A DNA stretch of 63,639 nucleotides, the filler included, from Pelomyxa schiedti (lineage: Eukaryota > Protista > Evosea): NCBI GenBank assembly GCA_020536535.1. It is 6 parts of 6 records of this genome, joined end to end, with 100 filler letters (N's around TTAATTAATTAA, not from the genome) between each part and the next. Parts side by side here need not be neighbours in the genome. Positions count along the whole stretch, not along the records: positions 40,521 to 57,555 come from JAHLWZ010000282.1; 5 more parts are not named here. The stretch is one strand, 5' to 3'. The translations under genes and the position numbers were made by a program. This document shows positions 41,717 through 57,555 of the stretch, one piece after another (position 1 is the stretch's first letter; each line of letters begins with the position of its first letter). The notes below the pieces were generated by a model. It was not told the DNA's origin and ran no database searches. It saw only the letters and a list, made by a program, of their open reading frames with translations.

Positions 41717-43416
41717 ACAAGAATGACCTTTAATTGAATGGGGTGTCTCTGAAGCTGATACTGGCTGAAGGTATCCAGCAGGAATACAGCAGAATCTGAC
41801 CACTGGTTACTGAATAAATGTGAAATGGCATCCCCGAAGGAGCTCTCTTTCAAACTCAAAGGTTGTGGGAGGTGATGGATGAGCCACGCCAAACCGTTCA
41901 AAAGAGGCGAACTATAGACAGAGCACAACTCAGTCAGTATGCTTTCAACGCAACCTGGTTTGGAATTGATGTGATCCATGACGTGGAAGGTGACATCCAA
42001 CCACTCTGCCACATCAGTGTTGCTCTTCTCCAGTGCTTTTTTCAGGCCTTTGGTGATGTCACTTGGTGTGAGTGTCACCCTCGTTGAAAGCCACTTGGCA
42101 AGTGATGAGGACGAAGAAGGACCACTTGATTTACAAGCCAATACAAATGATTCAGGAGTTGGTGCAAGTTTCTTCACAGTCACCAACCACTGAGCAAACT
42201 CCACGTTTCCAAGGTTTCCACAGAGACTGTTCAAAGTATCCTGACTTGGATTGAGGGGCAAAGTTGTCAGAACCCACTTGGCAACATCTGCATTCCTAAT
42301 CTCTTTCAAGATCACATCACTTTCTCCCAACACACTTCGAATATCAGCTTCAAAATATTGGCAATCTTCCACAGATGCATGTGCGTTCCTGAGCAGTGAG
42401 TGCACAGTTTCCTCCTTGTCAATAGGAACAGTACATTTCTTCTCAATGAACCACCTCGAATCTCCAGGGGAGTCGCCTCTCAAACACCACATCAACAAAT
42501 CCTCAAGTGTCGAGGTGTCCAGCCTTTCCTGCAAATCAAACTCATCAAACAACCACTTGACCACTTTGCTTTTCCCGTTCCACAGAGGAACCCACAGAGA
42601 TTGGCACAGAAACCAAGGGGCATCCTCCCACCCAATCCCAAGAACAGAGAGCAGCCACTTGGCCAGCTCCACGTTTTCAGACTCACACACGTTCCCGAGA
42701 ATCGAGTGCTTTGACTCGCACGACGCCCTCACATACTCAATCACCTTCCTCCTAAGCTCCCCACCGCCGCCGCCGCCGCCGCAATCAGTGACATCATCGA
42801 CATAGCCATCAGCTGCCATCCACCTCGTGGCCACGCGCCGACCATCCCACAGAATCGGCAGCGTGCCTCTGCTGCTGTCCCCATCGTAATCACCCCCCAT
42901 CAGCGAGCGAGCGGCCTGCACGTGGCCCCCCATGCACAGGCCCGAGAGCGTCGCCACCACCTCCTTCACTGCCAGATTCTGCCCCCGAATTTGGTCTTGC
43001 CGCTGCCGCTGGTTCCAACGCACCTGACTCGCAGAGATGATGATGGCGGCGGCGGCGGTTGTTGTTGGTTGTTCCCTGTGGTTGGAGATCCACGCGATGC
43101 ACGAGGGGGCGGGGGCCCGGGCCGCGAGCGTGATGACGCCGTGCTTGGACCCTGGGTCGTTGCCCTTGAGCGTGCGGGGGAGCGCGAGGACCCGGCGGCA
43201 GGCGAGGGCCACGAGGGGGAACATCGCCTCGGCCACCGAGAACACGTCGACTTGGCCGCAGCACCAATAGCTGTTGGCGAGCGAGTCGAGCCAGCCGGGG
43301 GCCACCACCATGTCCCACACAACTCGCGAGAGGGCCACCACGCGATCGCGCGCCACACAACGTTGGTGGTCGAGGTCGTAAGATACTCGCTGCGTCGTTG
43401 TGCCTGTTGATGACAT
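41717..43416 (-). CDS. 'SRVVWD'-family ankyrin-like protein, copy B (3' end in gap)
   Basis: Intronless ORF MSSTGTTT..VVALSRVVWDMVVAPGWLD..GNVEFAQWL. Confidence 0.8.
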
Positions 43417-43474: not shown

Positions 43475-45352
43475 GGCTGTGGAGAGGTTGAACTTTCGAA
43501 TCACCCACTTCACAACTTTGCTGCTGGGGTGCTCGTAAGGGATGTCTGTGGTCAAGCACTGGCCCACGAACTCTGGTGTCAACACCAACGAGGAATCCAC
43601 ACCAAGACACTGAATGACGTGCTGAAGAGCTCCAAGGTCACTCTTCATCAGCCCAACAAGAATTGGCTTAAATTGAATGGGGTTTCTCTGGGGCTGGTAC
43701 TGGGTGAAGGTGTCAAGCAGGAATACAACAGCATCTGACCACTGGTTACTGAATAAATGTGAAATGGCATCCCCGAAGGAGCTCTCTTTCAAACTCAAAG
43801 GTTGTGGGAGGTGCTGTACAAACCACTTCAACCCCGCAAGTGATGGAATATAACCAGAGAGCAACTCAGTCAGTGTGCTCTCAGAACAACCTGGTTTGGA
43901 ATTGATGTAATCCATCACATGGAAGGTGACATCCAACCACTCGGCAACTTCAATGTTGCTTTTCAGCAGTGCATTGATCAGGCCTTTGGTGATGTCACTT
44001 TGTGTGAGTGTCACCCTCGTTGAAAGCAATTTGGAAAGGTGACATCCAAGTGATGAAGAAGAACAAGCCAATATAAATGATTCAGGAGTTGGTGTAAATT
44101 TCTTCTCAGTCATCAACCACTGAGCAAACTCCACGTTTCCAAGGTTTCCACAGAGATAGCTCAAAGTCTCCTGACTTGGACTGAGGGACAAAGTTGTCAG
44201 CACCCACTTGGCAACATCTGGATTGTGTATATCTTTCAGGAGGTAGTCGTCGACACCAACACTTTGAATATCAGCTTCAAAATATTGGCAATCTTCCACA
44301 GATGCATGTTCGTTCCTGAGCAGTAACTCTATGGTTTTCTCCTGTGCGGGTAAAGGAAATTTCTTCTCAATGAACCACCTTGAATCTCCAGGGGAATTAC
44401 CTCTCAAACACCACTCAGTCAACTCCTTGAGGTTTGAGGGGTCCAGACTTGCCTCCAAGTGAAACTCATCGAGCAACCACTTGACAACTTTGCTTTTCCC
44501 ACGATTAACAGGAGGCCACAGGGAATTGCACCGAATCCAAGGAACATCCTTCCTGCCAATCCCAATAACAGAGAAAAACCACCTGGCCAGCTCCACGTCG
44601 TCAGACTCACACACGTAGTCGATAATCGGGTACTTTGACCCACACGACGCCCTCACATACTCAATCACCCACCTCCTAAGCACCCCACCGCCGCCACCTC
44701 CTCCCACAAGTCTGCTTCCACCCATGCAATCCCCTACATCACCGTCACCACCACCATCATCGGCGGCCTTCCACCTCGTTGGCACACACCGACCATCCCA
44801 CAGCATCGGCAGCGTGCCTGTGCTTCTGTGTTCGCCGCCGCCGCCGTCGTCACGGCCACCACACCCTTCGCAGTCGTCGTGGGCCCCCAGCAGCGATCGC
44901 GCCTCCTGCACGTGGCACCCCACGCACAACCCAGCCAACGTCGCGGCCACCTCCTTCACTGCAATCACCATCGGGCTATTTTGCCGGGTTGTGTTTGTTG
45001 TTGGTTGTTCCCTGTGGTTGGAGATCCACGCGATGCACGAGGGGGCGGGGGCCCGTGCCGCGAGCGTGATGACGCCGTACGTGGACCCTGGGTCGTTGCC
45101 CTTGAGCGTGCGGGGGAGCGCGAGGACCCGGCGGCAGGCGAGGGCCACGAGGGGGAACATCGCCTCGGCCACTGAGAACACGTCGACGTAGAGCCGCTCG
45201 TTGGTGGCGGCGTCGGTGCGCGGTGCGGCGTCGAGCCAGCCGGGGGCCACCACCATGTCCCACACAACTCGCGAGAGGGACACCACGCGATCGCAGGCAA
45301 CTTGGCGTTGGCCCTCGTTGGTCACCGGGTGTGCTGTTCCTGTTGTTGCCAT
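43475..45352 (-). CDS. 'SRVVWD'-family ankyrin-like protein, copy A (C-terminally truncated, no own stop before copy B)
   Basis: MATTGTAH..VVSLSRVVWDMVVAPGWLD..KVVKWVIRKFNL; homology to copy 1 ends about 90 aa early, and the frame runs on into copy B out of frame. Confidence 0.75.
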
Positions 45353-46052: not shown

Positions 46053-46172
46053 GTTGTTGGTTGTTCCCTGTGGTTGGAGATCCACGGCCCGTGCCGCGAG
46101 CGTGATGACGCCGTACGTGGACCCTGGGTCGTTGCCCTTGACTGTGCGTGGGGGCGACGAGGGGGAACATCG
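46053..46172 (-). pseudogene. ~120-bp internally deleted fragment of SRVVWD copy A
   Basis: Matches ~44997-45162 (KGNDPGSTYGVITLAAR, WISNHREQPT) with copy-A-specific bases and short deletions. Confidence 0.8.
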
Positions 46173-46298: not shown

Positions 46299-49200
46299 TC
46301 AGGGGGCAGAAACGATGATTGTGCCGGCCACGGCAGTGGGAGCTGCGGGTGTGAGGAACAGGGTGGAATTGGCCAGAGTGCACTGAATGCCAGGCCGGCA
46401 GAAGTTGGAGTAGATAATTACGTTACACACCACGACTCCCCTGTGATTTTGTTTGTTGTTTCAAGTTTATTTGGTTTGTTTGTTTTGTTTTAGTTAGTTT
46501 ATGTTAGCAGGCGAAGGTGGTGCATACTTATCATTTGGAGTGTGATGTAGCTTCACTTGGACATTGTAGGGGCCCGGCGGTGCCTTTTTTATCTGAAGAG
46601 GTTACTTCACTTCACCAGTTAGAGCCGCAAAACATAACATACCAAATATTCCGTGGGTCCATACCCTCCAGTAAAGTTTCGCGAAAGAAGACCTGTTTAA
46701 TATGAGGAAGGAATGATATGGAGAGGTGCTAACCCCCGAATCTGGTGTGATTGTTGAAACTGTAGCAAGTTTCTCCAGAAGGCTCCGTGATTATAAGGTC
46801 AACATCTTGACTAATATATTAGTTTCCTACAGGCCGGCGAGAAATCATGTTTGTTTACCTGCTAAGTTAGTGTCCCAGGTCAGCACACAGCGGAGATCAA
46901 CACCAAGTGGTGAAATTATGCGGGCATCGAAATTGGGCCTGAGTTGTGGCAACAACCTGGAAAGTTTTGTGGGTACAGGCAAAAGATCATAATGCCATTA
47001 CCCTTGAGATTCAGCTTCAGCCAGTATAGAATTCAATTCCTTTAAACAGTCAATCGTGGACACTACAGATACAGCAACGTGCCATTATTGCCACAAGTTC
47101 AACTTGCTCAAATCGGATATCCCAGTGTCTTTTTAGCACTTCATTCAGCAACTCCAGTGCCCGTTTCAGGGAGTCTTTGTACTATTTAGAAGGAAAACCA
47201 GTGGAACTGAATGGTACCAATCGTGTCGACATATGTGAGGGCGCATGCAAGGTCTAGGTATGACTAGAGGTGTTTTAGTCAATACCAGAAAATCGGGGAA
47301 CAACCTGTGGTTCCTCTGGTCTGCTTTTCAGTATTTCTTCAAGAAGGAAGATAGCGGTTCTACTTTCAGTTAGGTGCATGGGAATAAGAAAAAAGTACAC
47401 ACCGGAGACAGCCCATTTGCAGCAAAATTTTGCACATTAATCTCACTGTTGAGGGCTTGGTGTGAATAAAAACTTCAGAAACATTGCTCAGAGCACAGAG
47501 TGCCATCTGCTTCTTGAGTTTCGTGCTTCCACTCGCAAGAACTATGCCTGCTTGAAGACACAAGGAGGAATATTTCTCTTCTGTAATATGTTCCGAAGGC
47601 AACCCAGCAAACTTTCTGAATTCCTCAGAAAAAGTGTCTGTGCTTCCTTGAAATCACATAGGACATTACAGGATCATACCTTCAGGGCAATAGAGGAGCC
47701 GAGAGAGTTGGGTGATGTAGCTTGGTGAAGCGGGTGAGAATTTGAATGCTGCTGAGATTGCTGGAAGTGCTGGTTTTCGGGGAAGTGCCACTAAAGAAGT
47801 TGAATGTATAGAACCGGTTTGGGGTTGTTGAAGAGAGAGTTCTTGGAAACGCGGGTGGAGAGAAATTACTGGAATCATGGAAAGGGCCTGAACAGGGATC
47901 AACGGGGCAACGAGACTTTCTCCTGCTTGGGGTTGAACTGGGAGAGCTGGAGTAATAGTGGGAGCTTCAGCATTCCCTTCAGTTCGAGGATGGTCAGGTT
48001 TTGATGGTTCCGGTGGAGCTAGTTTCTGTTCTACTGGCTTACTGTCAGGAACAGATGTACTTTCACTGGAAGGCAGAGCTTCCTCCCCCCTAGAACGACT
48101 TGGAGTTACGTCAATACGAGGCTCTTGTTTGACTTCCTAAAGATCGATGAGATTCTATTGAGAAAAGATACTCTTACTGGTGTAGAAAAAGCCACACCCC
48201 CGGCACCATAGGGACTTTCAGCATATCCACCTCCAAAACACTTTCGATGAACGATGGAAGGTCCTGATTCATCATACCTACAAGCGATTAGGAATTCACG
48301 TGATTTGAGTTGACAAACTCCTCTTTTGACTGCCAAGGAAGCATGAACCCCAAATTTAACTTCCTCAGGCCTGTTGTCTCCTCCTAAAAAGAGTTATGGC
48401 TCTAAACGCTTTCCCTAAAGGAGTGATACATTTATTTCCAGTGCGGAATTGGTTACCCATAGCCTTCCTTCAAGATTGATTTTGATGTTTTCTTTTACCA
48501 TCTTGCCCTCTCTATCAACGATTACGTTGGAACTTGTATCATCTGGTCTTCTTTGTAGTCCCCTTTGCTGTTGTTGTTGCTGCTGGTAATACTGACCATC
48601 ACTGAAAAAGCTCTTATTCTGAATTTCATGCTGTGTCTCTGAAGAAGTGATTTTTCAATCGATGTCTTATCATTAGAATGAATCTGGTTGAACCTGCATT
48701 CAAAAAAGAGCGATCATTTGCTGACAACAGGTGACCAATATATTTTGTGAGATGCTTAGGGGCAGCTTTCATTCCAGGTCTCGGGGCGTTCTGCGGGGGA
48801 GATGGTCTAGCTGCTTGTTCCTCAGGGCTTGGTTCAATCTTGGCCTCTACGGGAGTATCAGCATTTGCAAGATCCGCCTTCATTTGTTAGGATAGTTCAG
48901 CAAAGTAAATGTTGGTGAACCGAGGTTTTTGAGGTATCTTTTTCAAGTTCCACAAAATTCATATCCGGTTGTTGCTTAAGAATTCGTTAGCTATTTCTTT
49001 TCTCCCCACTGAGAGAGTACTGGAGTGGAGCCGTCGTAGGATGTATTCCACCAAGATAGCCGGCGCCTCCACATTTGATAAGTTCGATATGATTTCAAGT
49101 TACTTTTTTCTTCTTCTTCAGCCTAAGTGAAAATTACTCCCAGGAGGTTAAATGGAACCCCACTCGCTGCTTAGCAATTTGAATTAAATACTCTCTTTTC

Positions 49201-51664
49201 ACAGAGGGAAGAGAGTCTGGAGGTTCAATGTGGTGCTTAAGATACTTGTTGAATGTCAAAATAAGGGAAAGTAAATAGTTGGAGATTGCCTGATCCAAGT
49301 GTTCTAAAACAATGAGAGAGGTCTCTGGAGTAACGAATCTGGAAAAACACATTTATTTTCTTCGAAGTGGTAACGTGAGTGTACCGATAACGTCGTCCCA
49401 AGTGGAGTATTTTTGCCTGATTTTGTTCATAATCACCAAATGTCGTAAGTTCTTCTGTGTGTTGTTGCGCCCAGTATCTAGAAACTAACAACAAAAATTG
49501 GTCTACACAAAAACAGAGAGGAGGTACCAGTTCCTTGTGTTAAAAAAGAGGGCTTTCGAGGAACTAAAATAGTTTGAGTCATCACGACACCAGTTTTCGG
49601 AGTTTTAAAGTGTAATAGAAGCTGCACTTTGGAGTAACATGTTACTAAGGGCTATTGTTCAGTTAAATTACACACTGTCTTCCATTGGAGATGGTATTCT
49701 GCCAGCAAGTTTGAAAACGTCAGAGAGGGGAGTTGGGGTTGCGGGAAAGGTATCAGATAAAGGTAAGCCAGCGGCATCAGTGCAACCAGTGTAAAATGTG
49801 ACTGGCTGGAGTATTAAACTCATTGGATCACTGATGGTGGTATGAGAAGTTGTAGAATTTTGGTCTGATACCAGGAGTTATTGAGATTAAAAAATAGTCC
49901 TCCACTTCTTGCGGAAACTCTCTGATAAAAGTAGGAACCAAGATTCACAGAATGGGTACAACCTTCATGTAACTGAAGTCTGCTTGAAGGGACGCAGTCA
50001 GGGTGAAAATAGGAACCGAGAAAGTAAAGCCCTGATAATCCTCATTCTGTAGGAACAACAGTATTAGTTTAGTAAACGACTATTGAAGTACCTCAATCCA
50101 ATTGTGCATCCCATCAGTAAAGAGGAGACAAATGGAATTTGGAGGAGCGGCATTAGCCCTAGCACAAGCACAAAGGAGGTTTGAACCGCCGTTGTAAACG
50201 GACTTAGATTGGATGTATGCCAGAATTGCAGTGGTATCAGAACACTTGGTACGGAATTCACTGATAATGGAGCCGGAAAATAATACTATATCGATAAAGG
50301 TTTTGCTTAAAATAGAGAGTGACTTGATAACGGCAAGTTCCCTGTGCAGTGTGAGAAATTTTCATTCAAAGTGGACGCACTTTGAGGTATCACACTGGGC
50401 CCTACTCAGAGATGTGTCCCAAAGAATAACCACACTGCTGACACTCTTCTGAGGCACCATGCCCTCTACATCAAAGTGCGCCTGAAATGCAAAAAAAACC
50501 TTGTCTGAGTCGTCTGTACTAGATTCCCCCGCCTCAGTGAGGGCGCGGGGAAGATGCTCTGTACAAGACTCGGAAGTAACCTCCTCTGAGGCGTTGGAGT
50601 GCTGCATTGCCATAGGAACATAAATGCTTATTGTATGTGGCGGAGCAGTATTGTGCATTTCATATTCGCATTCAAATTCATTTGGTGAAACTTGAACACC
50701 AGTCGGGGCAAGTAAACCACTCGCAGTCGCCAATACAGTACGAGGAGGAGAAATGAAAGGTGTTGGTGTCACAATAGAAGCCTTGTCTTACTGTTAGAAA
50801 TTGATGATTCACAACAGAGGACTACCTTAAAGTCAAAGGTATGTAGCTTGCTGACAGTACATAAAGGAAGTGTGTAGGCTATTTCTTCACTAAGCCGTCC
50901 CAATGGAGTAGTGAGTTGCTGGGTGAAAACAACTTGTACAATTCGGTCTGTATCTTTGTGAAATGGATAAATTCGCAAAGTGAAAATATTGGCAGTTGTT
51001 TGTTCTGCAATGGCTGCACCACGTTTTTCTCTCATCTGGGGAGCAAACCAATCAAATTTCAAATGCGAATTAGGTACAAACCTCCACTTCAAAGGTGGTT
51101 CTCGCTTTTTCTTTAGAAACCACTACCGCCTCAACAAGTTGGCCTGTTCTAAGGTTAGTCGCATAATAACAGAATATAATTGTACCATCCACATCAACCG
51201 CATACCCACAAACAGTTGCGTTCTCTGGCAAAGTCATGACCTGTGTGGAGCAAATAAGCACACCACTGAGTGGCATATTAACATATAATATTAATAATAT
51301 ATTAACAGATAGTAAGCAAACAAGCCCTCTTTCTTGTGAACAACCATACCAGCTGGCACTCAATGTCATCCGGGAATCCATCGCCCCCCGCATGTTCATA
51401 GCTTTTCGCGTCCTCGCGTGTCGGTTCGTCGTCGTCACTCGTCGCCGCGAGCGAAACGGTGGGTGCCGAGGAGGACCGTCGTCGCCGCCGCGAGAAGGCG
51501 AGCGTGAGGGTCGTCTCGGCCAGGAACCACGCCACCCGAGTTTTGACAGACACGCTCCGTGGTGGTATGTTGCCCAGTACACTGCTCGACGAGGCCGAGC
51601 ACGCCCGCAGCGAAAACAGCCCACCGTCACTACCGCACCCAGTGCGTTGGTTACTGGCGTCCAT
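46299..51664 (-). CDS. VIT + VWA-like + TPR + DUF2135(YfaP-like) protein, many introns, with embedded actin C-terminal peptide
   Basis: VIT: [43 protein letters not shown]. VWA-like: VVILWDTSLSR. FVTPETSLIVLE..HIEPP. TPR: ALSNVSEV..RPEEPQ..WDIRF. DUF2135: DLRCVLTWDT..DVDLIITEPSGETCY..SRNFTGGYGPTEY. Stop TGA 46299-46301. Confidence 0.85.
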
Positions 51665-51818
51665 TTGTTGTTGAAATGGTTCGTCCCGGTTTTGGATCTT
51701 AGTACTTCTCGGAACCGAATAATTAATTTTTTGAAGATGCCGAGAAAGACAGACCCAACTTGGGGATAACGCAAACGCGCGAGTGCGCTAGAAATACTTG
51801 TGGGTTTTTTTAATTTGC

Positions 51819-52911
51819 TTAGACAGCAGAGCAACCCTTGGGGTAGGCGGCGCTGGTGGAAATACCGCACTGGTTCTTGCCAATGCACATGCGGAAGTAT
51901 CCGCCCTCGCCCCATGATGTTCCCCAGCTGTTCTTGATCTTGTATGACTGCTCGGCAGTGTCGAGGCCAATCAGAAGAACGGCGTGATCAAGGGATGATG
52001 TGGAGCATGCGTCTGGGCACCAGATTCCTCCAGTGTAGGGTCTGTGAAGAAAGGGTTAGAATACGGCGAGAAACGAGGCAAAGCCATACGAGAGAAGGCG
52101 GGCATCAATGGCAACAGCAATTGGCTGTGTGAGAAGGGCACTTTGAAGCGCGCTGTCGGATCCCGAGGTGACAGCGACGTATGATGCGATCTTGGTGACC
52201 ATTGTCTGCTTAGTAACACAGTCCTTGGTATCAACAGCAGTATAGGGATAGGCTGCCTCAGTTGGGAGACCGGATTCAGCGCACTTGAAGGCTCCCACAA
52301 TTGTACCGCCAGAGCATCCGCTGCAGCAGAGGCCAGTGCAGCAGTCGACGAGGTCTTGTTCAGAGAGGGAAATGAGCTGCTTGTCTCCGAGGATGTTTCG
52401 GCAGGCCTCAATTGCGCCAATGGAGCCGAATGTCCAGCATGATCCGCAGCTGCCTTGATCCTTGGGCTTCTCGCACTTGTCAGTCCAGTCAACGTCAGAG
52501 GCAGCAGTTCCCTGAACCACTGTAACGTTGCCGTGGACTTGTGGCTTCATGAGGTATTGAGACTGCAGCATGGTAAGGAGGTGACAGGGAAAAACAAACA
52601 AATTAATTTAATTAATTTAATTTGTTTAGTTTTTAAATATAAGAATACATATTAGTAAAGGGGTAAACTATTACCTGAAACTCCTCGGGAGTGAGGTCGG
52701 TGAATTTGTTTGCGCCAACGGTCCAGGAGTGTCCCTCAGCGTTGAACTTGTCGAAGAACTTCATGTTGTGGCTCCAAATCTTGAACCTGAGGCTTGCCTG
52801 GTCCTCCGAGTCGTACTTCTTGCCATACTCAGCAGCCCACTTCTGGAAGTCAAAGCGTGTGTAAGCCGCAGCCGCGGCAACTAACAATGCAACAAGGAAA
52901 ACTGTCTTCAT
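51819..52911 (-). CDS. Cathepsin L-like papain-family cysteine protease, complete (signal peptide, I29 propeptide, 2 introns)
   Basis: MKTVFLVALLVAAAAA; GANKFTDLTPEEF; DQGSCGSCW; DHAVLL; KNSWG; ends CGISTSAAYPKGCSAV*. Confidence 0.95.
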
Positions 52912-53236
52912 TGTTTGCTTGTAAAACTTTTTTATTTTGTTTGTTTTGTGCTTAACGCTTGTTTAAAAGGCCCCGATCGTTAGCGGAGCTTTTGGGGTCG
53001 GGGAAAAAATGGGAACCCCCCAAACGCTTTTTCATCTCCGTTTCACCGCCAGAAATGTCAGATGAAACACGCCGGTGTCAGAATCTGAAAAAAGATGGAA
53101 AAACTGCATTTTGGGTAGGACCACTGTGGTCGAGGAAGTATAATTATGTAATCAGGGTACCCTCCACACACGCACTGCCCTAACCTGCAACCACACTGAT
53201 AGCAAACCCTTTTTCTTCGAATTGATTTCAAACAAA

Positions 53237-54927
53237 ATGTCGTTGGCAACGGGCGACCCTGAACAGAGTGGGAGGACCGATGAGGGTGATGGTGATGGTG
53301 ATGGTATCGAAGTTGCCATTGATCGGATTGGGGTGCTGATCCGAGCGTGCAACGAATGCAGGCAACTGCTGCCAGTCGCCCACGCAAATTTCAAGGTTGT
53401 TTTGTGGCTTGTGGGTTATTTTTCAAAATATTATTAATAGGGGTCGGTGAGGCCCCAAGTGTTTCCTGTGAATTCACAGGAGGTCATAACTGCAAAACTT
53501 CTTGTTGAATCTGCAGAAAAGGTGCTTGCTGTTTCCAAGGTACCTTCGCTTTGCATATTATCTCTTGATATTATATCTTGATATCGAGTTAAATACTGGG
53601 GCTGGGGTGTGGAAAAAGACAGAAATTCATACAAGCGAGCCATTCAACAACCCTGGTGGTTTACAACAGCTGCTGGATTTGACAAAGGAATTAGCAACAC
53701 GCCTTAAGGCTGACACTTGGCAGGAAGCGAGGACGTTCTTCTGTCAAGTTGATTCCCTGAACAAGGCTCTGCCGGTGTGCATTCAGAGTTTGCAAGCGAT
53801 AGAAGGTTCAAGGAAAGCAGCTGCTGAGGCACGAATCAAAGTGGCCTCCTTAGAAAGCGCAGTTGCCAAACTTCCTCCAATTGGTGGACCGAATGTCAGT
53901 TTGAGTGACCTCAAAAACCCCACGAGACTGGCACACACCAAAGCAAAGGGAGAATTGGCAAGGGCAGAGAAATCTATTCAGACCTACGACCAAAAATTGC
54001 GCAACCAGGGGGCCGCGATTCAGCCTTTCAACAGGTATTTTATTCTGTACAACAGCGGTCTATTCGAAAGAATCAGTAAAACAGAGGTGCCAAATATATA
54101 TATCCTTCCTTTTCTCACCAGATACAGAAGTATCTGGAAAGTAAAAAGGAACTCGAAGAACTTGAGGCCCGTTTGCCTGCACTGGAAAAAGAATTAGGCC
54201 ACCGCACAACACAAGCCAGGCTTCTGCTTCTTTCGCAGGTGAACTTCCACCAAATACACCATTGTAAAAAAATAGCCAGGGTCAAATTCCTGAAAACACA
54301 TATAATGTGTTGCAAAGACAGTTTACCATGCTGACAAACCCCTTCAGCCTGCTCCCTGTTGATGTGGCATGCTACATTTTCTCGCTTTCTTGCAAGAATC
54401 AGAGCAAGTATCTCCGGATGGGCCTTGTTTGCAAGAGTTTTCTATCTGCCATGCGCTTCCCGAATTTCTGGTGTGATGCGTATGTTGCCAGATTCGGGAA
54501 GCCTTGCTCAGAATGCGACCACGTGGATTGGTTCAAAAAATGTAATGGCTCTTCTTCCGTTCTTCTTTTGAACCGCGAAATCTAATCTAATCTAATATGA
54601 TCTATCTCACCACAAGACCTGAACCGGTCCAAAGCCTTCAAGCAGGCAGCCAAAGAAAGGAGGCATATCACAGTGCACCCAATAGAAGAGTGCAACAACA
54701 CGCAGTGCCCGGAACTCGTTGAGAACTGTACATACACATCAGCCACCACAAGGACCTGCCCCCAATGCCACAAGTCAACTCCCTGGCCTCCCCCTGGTGA
54801 CATTGATGATGCCAGACAAAGCAAAACCCGCAACAACAACCTATTACCAAACAAACAGCACACACACCATCAACAGCAACAACAACATCTTCATCAACAC
54901 AGCCCACCACTATCAACAACAACATAA
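53237..54927 (+). CDS. Coiled-coil protein with C-proximal F-box and Cys-rich tail, multi-exon
   Basis: F-box-like PFSLLPVDVACYIFS..YLRMGLVCKSF..FW; tail CNNTQC..CPQC; start taken where homology to the paralog begins (MSLATGDPE). Confidence 0.7.
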
Positions 54928-55689: not shown

Positions 55690-55846
55690 AGAACTTCATG
55701 TTGTGGCTCCAAATCTTGAACCTGAGGCTTGCCTGGTCCTCCGAGTCGTACTTCTTGCCATACTCAGCAGCCCACTTCTGGAAGTCAAAGCGTGTGTAAG
55801 CCGCAGCCGCAGCAACCAGCAATGCAACAAGGAATACTGTCTTCAT
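55690..55846 (-). CDS. Papain-family protease, 5' fragment (third locus)
   Basis: MKTVFLVALLVAAAAAYTRFDFQKW..HNMKF, same protein sequence as the start of the 52911 gene; truncated by N gap. Confidence 0.85.
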
Positions 55847-56199
55847 TTGTTTGCTTGTAAAACTTGGTGTTGTGTTGTCGGCTTTTTTATTTTGTGTTTT
55901 GTTGTGCTTAACGCTTGTTTAAAAGGCCCCGACCTTTTGGGGAGCTTTTGGGGCTCGGGGAAAAAAGGGAACGCCCCAAACGCTTTTTCATCGCCGGAAA
56001 AGAGAGATGAACACACCGGGGTAATAATCTGAAAAAAGATGAAAAAACCGGAAGATCTTGTGTACGGAGACTGCCGGCATTGAGGAAGTAACCGTAGTCC
56101 AACGCGAATTTTGTACACATTGGACTCAACGTGATGTCCCTCCCTGGAACTTGCACTCACACAACCATCACCCTTTTTCAAATTGATTTGAAAACCGGA

Positions 56200-57555
56200 A
56201 TGTTGTTGGCAACGGGCGACCCTGAACTGAGTGGGAGGACCGATGAGGGTGCTGGTATCGAAGTGGTCATTGATCGGATTGGGGTGCTGATCTCGGCGTG
56301 CAACGAATGCAGGCAACTGCTGCCAGTCGCCCACGCAAATTTCGAGGTTGTTCTGTGCTTGTGGGGTTTTTAAATTTCCAAAATATTATTAATAGGGGTC
56401 GGTGAGGCCCCAAGTGTTTCCTGTGAACGCACAGGAGGTCATAACTGCAAAACTTCTTGTTGAATTTGCGGACAAGGTGCTTGCTGTTTCCAAGGTACCT
56501 TCACTTTATATACATACAATATCTGATATCGAGTTAAATACTGGGGCTGGGGTGTGGAAAAAGACAGAAATTCATACAAGTGAGCCACTCAACAACACTG
56601 GTGGTTTACAACAGCTGCTGGATTTGACAAAGGAACTAGCAACACGCCTTAAGGCTGACACTTGGCAGGAATCGAGGATGTTCTTCTGGCAAGTTGATTC
56701 CCTGAACAAGGCTCTGTCAGTATGCATTCAGAGTTTGCAAGAGATAGAAGGTTCAAGGAAAGCAGCCTCTGAGGCACGAATCAAAGTGGCCTCCTTAGAA
56801 AGCGCAGTTGCCAAACTTCCTCCAATTGGTGGACCGAATGTCAGTTTGAGTGACCTCAAAAACCCCACGAGACTGGCACACACCAAAGCAAAGGGAGAAT
56901 TAGCAAGGGCAGAGAACTCTGTTCAGACCTACGACCAAAACTTGCGCAACCAGGGGGCCGCGATGCAACCTTTCAATAGGGACTTTATTCTATACAACAG
57001 CGGTCTATACGAAAGAATCAGTAAAACAGAGGTGCCAACAAGATAATATCCTTCCTTTTCTCTTTTTCCTCTGCTCACCGTTCTAATACAGAAGTATCTG
57101 AAAAGTAAAAAGGAACTCGAAGAACTTGAGGCCCGTTTGCCTGCACTGGAAAAAGAATTAGTCCACCGCACAACACAAGCCAGGCTTCTGCTTCTTTCGC
57201 AGGTGAACTTCCACCACATACACCATTGTAATAACACATCCAGGGTCAAATTCCTGAAAACGCATATAATGTGTTGCAAAGACAGTTTACCATGCTGACA
57301 AACCCCTTCAGCCTGCTCCCTGTTGATGTGGCATGCTACATCTTCTCGCTTTCTTGCAAGAATCAGAGCAAGTATCTCCGGATGGGCCTTGTTTGCAAGA
57401 GTTTTCTATCCGCCATGCGCTTCCCGAATTTCTGGTGTGATGCGTATGTTGCCAGATTCGGGAAACCTTGTTCAGAATGCGACCACGTGGATTGGTTCAA
57501 AAAATGTAATGGCTCTCTTCCGTTCTTCTTTTGAACCGCGATATCTAATTTAATC
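56200..57555 (+). CDS. Paralog of the coiled-coil/F-box gene (truncated at contig end)
   Basis: Colinear with 53237-54600, with substitutions and a diverged 5' flank. Confidence 0.7.

Follow-up and report, generated by a model that had tools for sequence, protein, structure and literature searches.

An actin C-terminal segment lies in frame within a bacterial-type VIT-VWA-TPR-DUF2135 protein of Pelomyxa schiedti and is very probably the relic of an integrated actin domain

We analysed a 63,639-nucleotide (nt) stretch of DNA from the anaerobic archamoeba Pelomyxa schiedti (hereafter the window, along the whole of which positions are counted), within which a 17-kb piece, JAHLWZ010000282.1, carries on its minus strand a gene that joins VIT, VWA-like, TPR-like and DUF2135 modules to the last residues of an actin. 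The gene (46299-51664) has more than 30 exons and introns of 40-55 nt. Its start was taken from the NCBI protein model KAH3764445.1 (P0001) and its stop codon (46301-46299) was set by homology to the C-terminus of a paralogue, KAH3764700.1 (P0002), which aligns collinearly by tblastn from 51592 to 46305; between these ends, joints in RNA contigs define the exons from 49808 to 47486. The actin segment, referred to here as the tail, sits between the N-terminal and C-terminal modules, in the middle of the protein.

Exons of the gene were searched singly (Pfam, BLASTP and hhalign). An N-terminal VIT domain is present at 50826-51237 (Pfam VIT, E = 6.8e-17 on KAH3764445.1, which maps to the window at 100%, with VIT matches for individual exons), where the bacterial homologue P0005 also aligns (51231-51082, E = 1e-5). 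The VWA signal at 50092-50430 is sub-threshold in Pfam (VWA_2, E = 0.016, for the window exon; VWA_CoxE, 0.003, for the paralogue), and the region is collinear with the VWA regions of both the paralogue and P0005 (the latter at 50430-50113, E = 8e-5). The final block in common with the bacterial N-terminal module is the exon at 49021-49122 (AEEEEKS..MWRRRLSWWNTSYDGSTP; RNA joints 49122/49166 and 48974/49021), which is 46% identical to residues 573-613 of the paralogue, and an insertion starts just downstream of it. Two low-complexity exons follow, at 48694-48877 (present in RNA contig record 2; its last 22 residues, 48766-48701, are AAPKHLTKYIGHLLSANDRSFL) and at 48430-48638 (poly-Q, ending ..NIKINLEGRLWVTNSALEIN; RNA records 1 and 2), then the two exons of the tail, and then a 457-nt exon (47680-48136) that translates into a 152-residue low-complexity linker rich in P, S, T, Q and E, is matched by RNA record 1 with no mismatch and has as its counterpart a 196-residue linker exon in the exon map of the paralogue. 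The tail is now flanked by about 170 and 190 residues of mostly low-complexity sequence. Helical, TPR-like exons (..AIFLLEEILKSRPEEPQ / SYLDLACAL.. / DSLKRALELLNEVLKRHWDIRFEQVELVAIM) at 47053-47637 are collinear with residues 1216-1385 of the paralogue, the homologous part of which gives a weak TPR_19 match (E = 5e-4), and they precede the C-terminal DUF2135/YfaP_C exons (..DLRCVLTWDTN.. / DVDLIITEPSGETCYSFNNHTRFGG / LLSRNFTGGYGPTEYL / KKAPPGPYNVQVKLHH) at 46497-46997. The DUF2135 exons are identified by high-scoring segments with the paralogue and by alignment to P0005 (Pfam DUF2135, 1.2e-12), the DUF2135 part of which matches 46806-46643 (E = 7e-5). A per-exon Pfam scan of this C-terminal half of the gene gave no match, which we attribute to the shortness of the exons (15-35 codons). 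The first exon (51347-51592, minus strand) carries, relative to the paralogue, about 32 extra Arg/Ser/Asp-rich residues (RRRRRSSSAPTVSLAATSDDDEPTREDAKSYEHAGG) in a GC-rich segment.

The bacterial homologues (for example P0003-P0006) are proteins of about 890 residues with VIT (PF08487) and DUF2135/YfaP_C (PF09906). They align to residues 1-610 and 1240-1540 of the paralogue only, the N-terminal alignment ending at about residue 610 and a gap extending across actin and linker; the C-terminus of the paralogue matches P0005 at E = 2e-31. P0005 has a bacterial gene neighbourhood (ribosomal-protein and trmD genes) and aligns directly to the VIT, VWA and DUF2135 exons of the window gene, in agreement with a first reading of the DNA (the earlier note), which had described the host as a bacterial-type VIT-VWA-TPR-DUF2135 protein.

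The tail is encoded at 48235-48335, read on the minus strand. Upstream of an intron the sequence is TTC ATG CTT CCT TGG CAG TCA AAA GAG GA (TGG to GA = 48335-48319), the end of an exon at 48319-48383 that holds the first part of the motif (F..W..SKEE) and leaves off in phase 2 within a Glu codon (GA|G). The intron (48318-48278; 41 nt, GT-AG) reads gtttgtc...gcttgtag, and from 48277 the coding sequence resumes as G TAT GAT GAA TCA GGA CCT TCC ATC GTT CAT CGA AAG TGT TTT GGA GGT GGA TAT, in an exon (48178-48277) that supplies the second part of the tail and reads on into a Gly-rich stretch. The tail Phe (TTT) is followed not by a stop but by GGA GGT GGA, and three more exons confirmed by RNA carry on the open frame. 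When the 33 residues of the second exon alone were searched against 177,635 PDB sequences, they matched actins only, at their extreme C-termini, with identity at 14 of 14 positions (E = 1e-3 to 6e-3). With the SKEE and Trp contributed by the preceding exon, 18 of 18 consecutive residues plus the W match the canonical actin C-terminus; over these 18 residues, the tail is identical to amoebozoan-type actin C-termini, including E364, H371, C374 and F375. Other actin-like motifs were found in no frame of the 17-kb piece, and the 95-residue genomic open reading frame around the motif had no match in a set of 5.8 billion proteins.

The structure of the transcript was read from a single-cell transcriptome labelled 'protist metagenome' (X1), alongside three libraries from the same study whose type is unrecorded (X2-X4), by mapping the contigs of each run to 46350-52340. 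In X2-X4 the locus occurs in unspliced form only, on contigs of 2.8-5.6 kb that span it; because these contigs are long and unspliced, we take the three libraries to hold genomic DNA, and the spanning of the locus in all three excludes an assembly chimera. In X1, an 898-nt contig covers 47486-47637, 47680-48135, ~48177-48275, ~48317-48382 and 48429-48553, and its four junctions (48382/48429, 48275/48317, 48135/48177 and 47637/47680) are all GT-AG on the minus strand, with introns of 41-46 nt. The splice inside the motif falls exactly at the predicted intron (joint 48275/48317, cut +2; also delimited by DNA comparison with the paralogue), and the three neighbouring introns measure 46 nt (48384-48429, GT-AG; joint 48382/48429, cut +1), 41 nt (48137-48177, GT-AG; joint 48135/48177, cut +1) and 42 nt. 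With phases assigned by hand, the frame is open through all four junctions (...AFSTP|EVKQEPRID...(152 residues)...CPEG|DTFSEEFRKF...). Two further RNA contigs carry the spliced transcript upstream to 49808 across eight more introns of 40-55 nt, and the open frame extends over more than 2 kb in the spliced contigs; no RNA contig of this run covers 49950-51750, where the N-terminal half is encoded. At 49165 the RNA contig differs by G>A (coding strand), an R/Q replacement. Together, these contigs uphold much of what the earlier note had claimed: its coordinates for the motif are exact, the junctions across the motif are spliced as predicted and in frame, the peptide is internal in the mature mRNA with no stop after the F, and the locus, spanned unspliced in three DNA runs and spliced in RNA, is not a chimeric assembly. 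Its statement that the upstream exon is open in one frame only was mistaken, as two frames are open and the RNA splice decides between them.

Public annotation stops short of the tail. KAH3764445.1, a protein of 661 residues named 'TonB-dependent receptor', is 100% identical to 51664-49137 and is therefore the public model of the window gene. Compared with the RNA joints, it keeps an in-frame 45-nt GC-AG intron (49289-49245), adding AISNYLLSLILTFNK, and then reads through a canonical intron (49162-49123) into a stop, so that it ends about 800 nt before the tail, which is consequently missing from the public proteome; the analysis thus corrects a model that is both truncated and misnamed. The P. 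schiedti genome is an assembly from single cells by multiple displacement amplification, with 7.43 introns per gene, 98.4% GT-AG and 1.6% GC-AG (PMC8887013), and the intron features of the window gene agree with these genome-wide figures.

A search of the VIT exon against 1.84 billion representative proteins returned two matches only, KAH3764445.1 and KAH3764700.1, both from P. schiedti. The second, a protein of 1540 residues annotated 'actin family', is encoded on a different contig of the same assembly (JAHLWZ010000266.1; L001 3128-9341), is 41% identical to the window gene in the VIT block and has at least ten intron positions in common with it (from exon maps and RNA joints). In Pfam it shows VIT (2e-17) and a complete Actin domain (3e-115, residues 676-1040); this actin module can be aligned over its full length to actins of solved structure (4efh_A, E = 2e-129) and is 55% identical to the actin consensus. 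Its best conserved blocks are the tail and residues ~76-113, its D-loop is four residues shorter, and three nucleotide-site residues (S14, G158 and H161) are replaced, which suggests that the module is non-canonical and probably non-polymerising. The actin tail of the paralogue also lacks a stop, reading F-GG onward into a 196-residue low-complexity exon and then into TPR-like helices and DUF2135. The two genes thus agree in having F-GG after the tail and then a long low-complexity exon, and the intron within the tail interrupts the same Glu codon in the same phase in both (L001 7246-7294, 49 nt, versus 48318-48278, 41 nt). By tblastn, residues ~635-1016 are the sole part of the paralogue without a counterpart in the window gene. 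A search with the whole paralogue found no other VIT+Actin protein among the 8000 word-sharing candidates scored (847-2695 residues), and the 120 matches listed for its actin module as query were all from other organisms, none being a P. schiedti conventional actin.

The top normal-length match to this actin module, P0088, sits on a bacterial-type contig. P0088 is a 375-residue actin encoded at L006:2183-4603 (Logan SRR9302962, 28.8 kb) in tandem, on one strand, with genes for profilin, an 87-residue open reading frame, cofilin/ADF and an ankyrin protein. The contig is compact and prokaryote-like, with bacterial flanks (GlyS beta subunit, amidase, ThyX and a Der/EngA-like GTPase), and the arrangement has the appearance of a cluster of actin, profilin and cofilin genes within a genome of bacterial type.

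In the window gene, the RNA-defined exons between the MWRRRLSWWNTSYDGSTP block (49122-49021) and the tail encode only about 170 residues, much of them low-complexity and including a poly-Q run; given this length and introns that are all 40-55 nt, a full actin cannot be hidden there. In keeping with this, the Actin Pfam profile (PF00022) had no match at E<=1 on any exon of the gene, and the complete actin fold is absent. The only trace of the actin body, and a marginal one, may be AAPKHLTKYIGHLLSANDRSFL (48766-48701), which aligns at a collinear position to columns 184-205 of the actin profile (hhalign, E = 0.01) and to residues 851-866 of the paralogue (BLASTP, E = 0.023), and whose exon (48694-48877) scored z = 2.7 (p = 0.016) in a shuffle test. 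The other two exons were without actin trace, 48430-48638 by BLASTP, hhalign and shuffle test alike. An alignment by eye of IKINLEGRLWVTNSAL to VKVIAKPERRYNAWIGGSIL has no statistical support, the shuffle test backing exon 48694-48877 only.

The two paralogue tails were then compared with the rest of the proteins. At the amino acid level, 19 of 20 tail residues are identical (the sole difference being S/A), relative to roughly 25-55% identity in the other alignable blocks. At the nucleotide level, 11 of the 19 conserved codons differ synonymously, including TCA/AGC (Ser) and CGA/AGG (Arg), such that the proportion of synonymous differences (pS) is ~1.0, that is, saturated, and the proportion of nonsynonymous differences (pN) is 0.07. 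This combination of synonymous saturation with amino acid identity rules out both a recent neutral capture and a recent conversion of one paralogue by the other, and argues for purifying selection on the tail rather than recent capture. FMLPWQ, just upstream of the tail in the window gene, corresponds to FQQ(M/S)W(I/T) in actins, the F, Q, Q and W of which are invariant in the 20 actins aligned, the paralogue included; four of these six positions have changed in the window gene, compared with one of 20 in the tail (Fisher one-sided p ~0.005, calculated by hand), which indicates that constraint has lapsed on residues that served the fold, and not on the tail.

Two conclusions follow with different strength. 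The tail is very probably the relic of an integrated actin domain, as indicated by a whole actin at the homologous site of the paralogue, by the same intron position and phase, and by the same continuation into F-GG, all of which mark the tail as the remainder of a whole domain. That it has been kept by selection for a function of its own is probable, and the explanation that we favour, with a similar degree of confidence, is a selectively maintained end of a whole inserted actin domain, including a role as a docking motif. In the most economical history, a VIT-VWA-TPR-DUF2135 (YfaP_C) gene of bacterial type, which now carries many spliceosomal introns, would have acquired, in frame and in the Pelomyxa lineage, a complete actin domain between the VIT-VWA and TPR-DUF2135 modules; the fusion gene would later have been duplicated, one copy (KAH3764700.1) keeping a complete, divergent actin module and the copy in the window losing the actin body and keeping the tail. 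These results bear on the earlier note at several points: its reading of a bare captured actin tail is not sustained, given the complete actin domain, shared site, shared intron and F-GG continuation in the paralogue; its remark that no other actin lies nearby holds for the 17-kb piece and fails for the gene family; and its arguments that the motif is no fresh insertion, that it is kept under selection and that it is split by an intron agree with the codon differences, the RNA junction and the conserved phase, which point to purifying selection and to a real, old intron.

Capture of the tail by itself, for example through retro-copying of the 3' part of an actin gene, and its retention as a decoy by a scaffold unrelated to actin would account for a peptide that is internal, in frame and conserved, and for the lack of any other actin motif in the 17-kb piece. 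It would also require more events than insertion and loss of a whole domain, since a whole actin would have had to be rebuilt at the same site in the paralogue, where the full actin ends in the same tail with the same intron and GG-linker continuation, and we regard it as highly improbable. Ectopic gene conversion, in which genuine actin 3' ends repeatedly overwrite both tails so that their identity reflects selection on actin, is very unlikely: the homologous tract is only ~60 nt and is split by an intron in both paralogues, no homology flanks the tract in the window gene, conservation extends past the Phe to a GG that is foreign to actin, and the two tails differ at 11 synonymous sites. In its favour, actin genes tend to exist in several copies, which could be sources of differing synonymous variants. 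An artefact (a chimera of amplification or assembly, a mis-called splice or an untranslated pseudogene segment) is suggested by the chimera-prone method behind the genome, multiple displacement amplification of single cells (PMC8887013), and by a public gene model that stops before the motif, but is scarcely credible in view of the long contigs of three DNA runs, the canonical junctions and the frame, open for more than 2 kb, in RNA contigs from a library with a separate sample record, and a model truncation that one retained and one read-through intron explain.

More weight belongs to the idea that the tail was orphaned recently, has no function of its own, is conserved only from its time in a folded actin module and will decay. 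The upstream exons lack significant actin homology, which fits deletion rather than long decay, and a single pairwise comparison (20 codons, two sequences) stands behind the conservation, a point that counts for this idea and against ours alike. We nonetheless judge it improbable, as the adjoining residues, with F and W at the same spacing, have changed at four of six actin-invariant positions while the next 20 changed at one, and transcripts of the gene are present, with correct splicing through the tail. Further points weigh against the explanation that we prefer. No orthologues from other species were found that carry the tail in a VIT-VWA-DUF2135 context; gene conversion from the conventional actins of P. 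schiedti is conceivable, if very unlikely; the architecture of the paralogue was taken from a public gene model; and the putative remnant of the actin body is marginal, being barely detectable (E 0.01-0.02). Moreover, deletion followed by unrelated filler is indistinguishable from slow decay, which weakens the timing argument for selection after the loss of the fold. As for function, the tail's role is inferred from sequence, and the tail makes up only part of the folded surface with which profilin is in contact, so a linear peptide may not suffice.

If the tail is indeed a selectively maintained end of an actin domain, then, with no subdomain 1 to pack on, the peptide would most likely be an exposed short linear motif, which could dock a protein that normally recognises the C-terminal segment of actin and so tie the VIT-VWA/DUF2135 scaffold to actin-regulatory machinery without the whole actin fold. 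CH-domain and ADF/cofilin-type proteins have been reported to contact actin residues ~350-375. Profilin would be the best documented candidate ligand: in Acanthamoeba, profilin cross-links to E364 of actin, which is the Glu in YDE (PMC2115722), and nitrosylation of Cys374 impairs profilin binding (PMC5386235). That the actual partner is profilin or another actin-binding protein is nevertheless doubtful on present evidence. Isolated 8- and 11-residue peptides of the actin C-terminus bind DNA and slide along it, and stimulate the adenovirus proteinase (PMC4740752), which indicates that an actin C-terminal peptide can work without the fold. Alternatively, the peptide could possibly bind the protein's own TPR module, act as a decoy for actin-targeting factors or mark a site of proteolytic processing after the Phe.

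The surroundings of the gene are repetitive. The left edge of the contig (40521-41210) is 97-99% identical to 51349-52028, a stretch with exon 1 of the VIT-VWA gene and the 3' end of the protease gene upstream of it; the repeat could be a further tandem duplicate of very recent origin, cut off by the contig end, or an overlap left by assembly, and it may be the reason why variants cluster at 51470-51767 in X2 and X3. Directly upstream of the VIT gene, at 51822-52962 on the minus strand, lies a gene for a papain-family cysteine protease (Peptidase_C1, 9e-34), which is spliced in the RNA run (joint 52041/52090), with RNA contigs far deeper than those of the VIT gene, and which belongs to a tandem array with a period of ~2.95 kb (52755-54421 versus 55690-57385). 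On the other side, 41717-43366 and 43656-45311 form a 1.93-kb tandem pair (82-98% identity) with GC-rich segments (~60% GC); a 904-residue minus-strand open reading frame across this pair has no Pfam match and may be spurious. A 71-nt GC-rich element occurs three times, one copy being at 46086-46156.

To our knowledge, actin is hardly ever built as a domain into a larger protein. The two P. schiedti paralogues, one with a whole actin and one with a 20-residue tail, amount to a natural deletion experiment, and the finding points to a fold-independent role of the extreme C-terminal segment of actin (E364, H371 and Cys374; part of the profilin contact area), whose fold-independent activities have so far been studied with synthetic peptides only. 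For the uncharacterised DUF2135/YfaP_C, of which we found no mention in the literature searched, it would provide a first functional lead, a link to the actin system at least in P. schiedti. A stronger possibility, which we entertain only tentatively, is that the 20-residue tail is an autonomous, selected actin-mimic motif, the fold having been deleted and only the peptide kept. If so, the peptide alone would recruit or trap profilin or another barbed-face ligand, an actin-modifying enzyme, or an effector from a symbiont or pathogen, and the Pelomyxa VIT-VWA-actin-DUF2135 pair, bacterial in ancestry, would represent a novel type of scaffold coupled to actin or of sensor with an integrated decoy.

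In the literature searched, we found no description of actin integrated in a VIT-VWA-DUF2135 protein, nor of a tail-reduced paralogue of one, and a metagenome scan for IVHRKCF-GG read-through yielded two actin fusions or extensions, both unrelated, and no relatives of the Pelomyxa type. One of these (L004:3-3305; JGI Ga0073954_11719846) is a 1101-residue single open reading frame in which a near-complete actin domain (Pfam, 1e-112) reads through into a linker and on into a Sec23/24-type zinc finger and a VWA/Sec23-trunk-like domain, and is another fusion of actin to a VWA-fold protein, in a different order; the other (L005:579-854, minus strand; JGI Ga0105054_10310760) encodes the C-terminal half of an actin with ~75 further in-frame residues before a stop and is an actin with a C-terminal extension or else a piece of a fusion.

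Compared with known systems, the window gene is closest to KAH3764700.1, with which it shares VIT, a VWA-like region, a helical region, an insertion, a low-complexity linker, TPR-like helices, DUF2135 and many intron positions, and from which it differs in having the last ~20-25 residues and a marginal 22-residue trace in place of a complete actin domain. With the bacterial VIT-VWA-TPR-DUF2135 proteins, the N-terminal (VIT, VWA) and C-terminal (TPR-like, DUF2135) modules are collinear at 26-31% identity, whereas the bacterial proteins have no introns, no actin and no low-complexity linker. Conventional actin (residues ~352-375, subdomain 1) shares 18 identical C-terminal residues with the window gene; in actin, however, the segment ends at the free carboxylate of Phe375 and packs on subdomain 1, whereas the window tail is internal, is followed by GGG and has no actin fold around it. 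In plant nucleotide-binding leucine-rich repeat (NLR) immune receptors, an integrated decoy domain is a copy of a targeted host protein built into the scaffold. The idea of a decoy would suppose a similar copy in a larger scaffold, by analogy only, as the window gene has no NLR-type signalling domain and there is no evidence of effector targeting. Dictyostelium Vwa1, likened here by its description, is a cytoplasmic amoebozoan VIT+vWFA scaffold that lacks a signal peptide and falls in a clade continuum with bacterial sequences among its members; actin and DUF2135, terms that the paper does not use, are not among its modules (PMC10539598). The adenovirus pVIc/actin peptide, in which an isolated 8- to 11-residue (SGP)SIVHRKCF has fold-independent activity (PMC4740752), is a precedent for peptide autonomy only: cofactors of the pVIc type and molecular sled peptides have free C-termini, with a ...basic-basic-basic-Cys-Phe end, whereas the HRKCF of the window gene is internal, and neither an adenain-type protease nor a DNA context is evident. 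The parts (actin, VIT, VWA and DUF2135/YfaP_C) are all known families, and the pattern is one of domain fusion with later reduction of the fused domain to a linear motif that is conserved.

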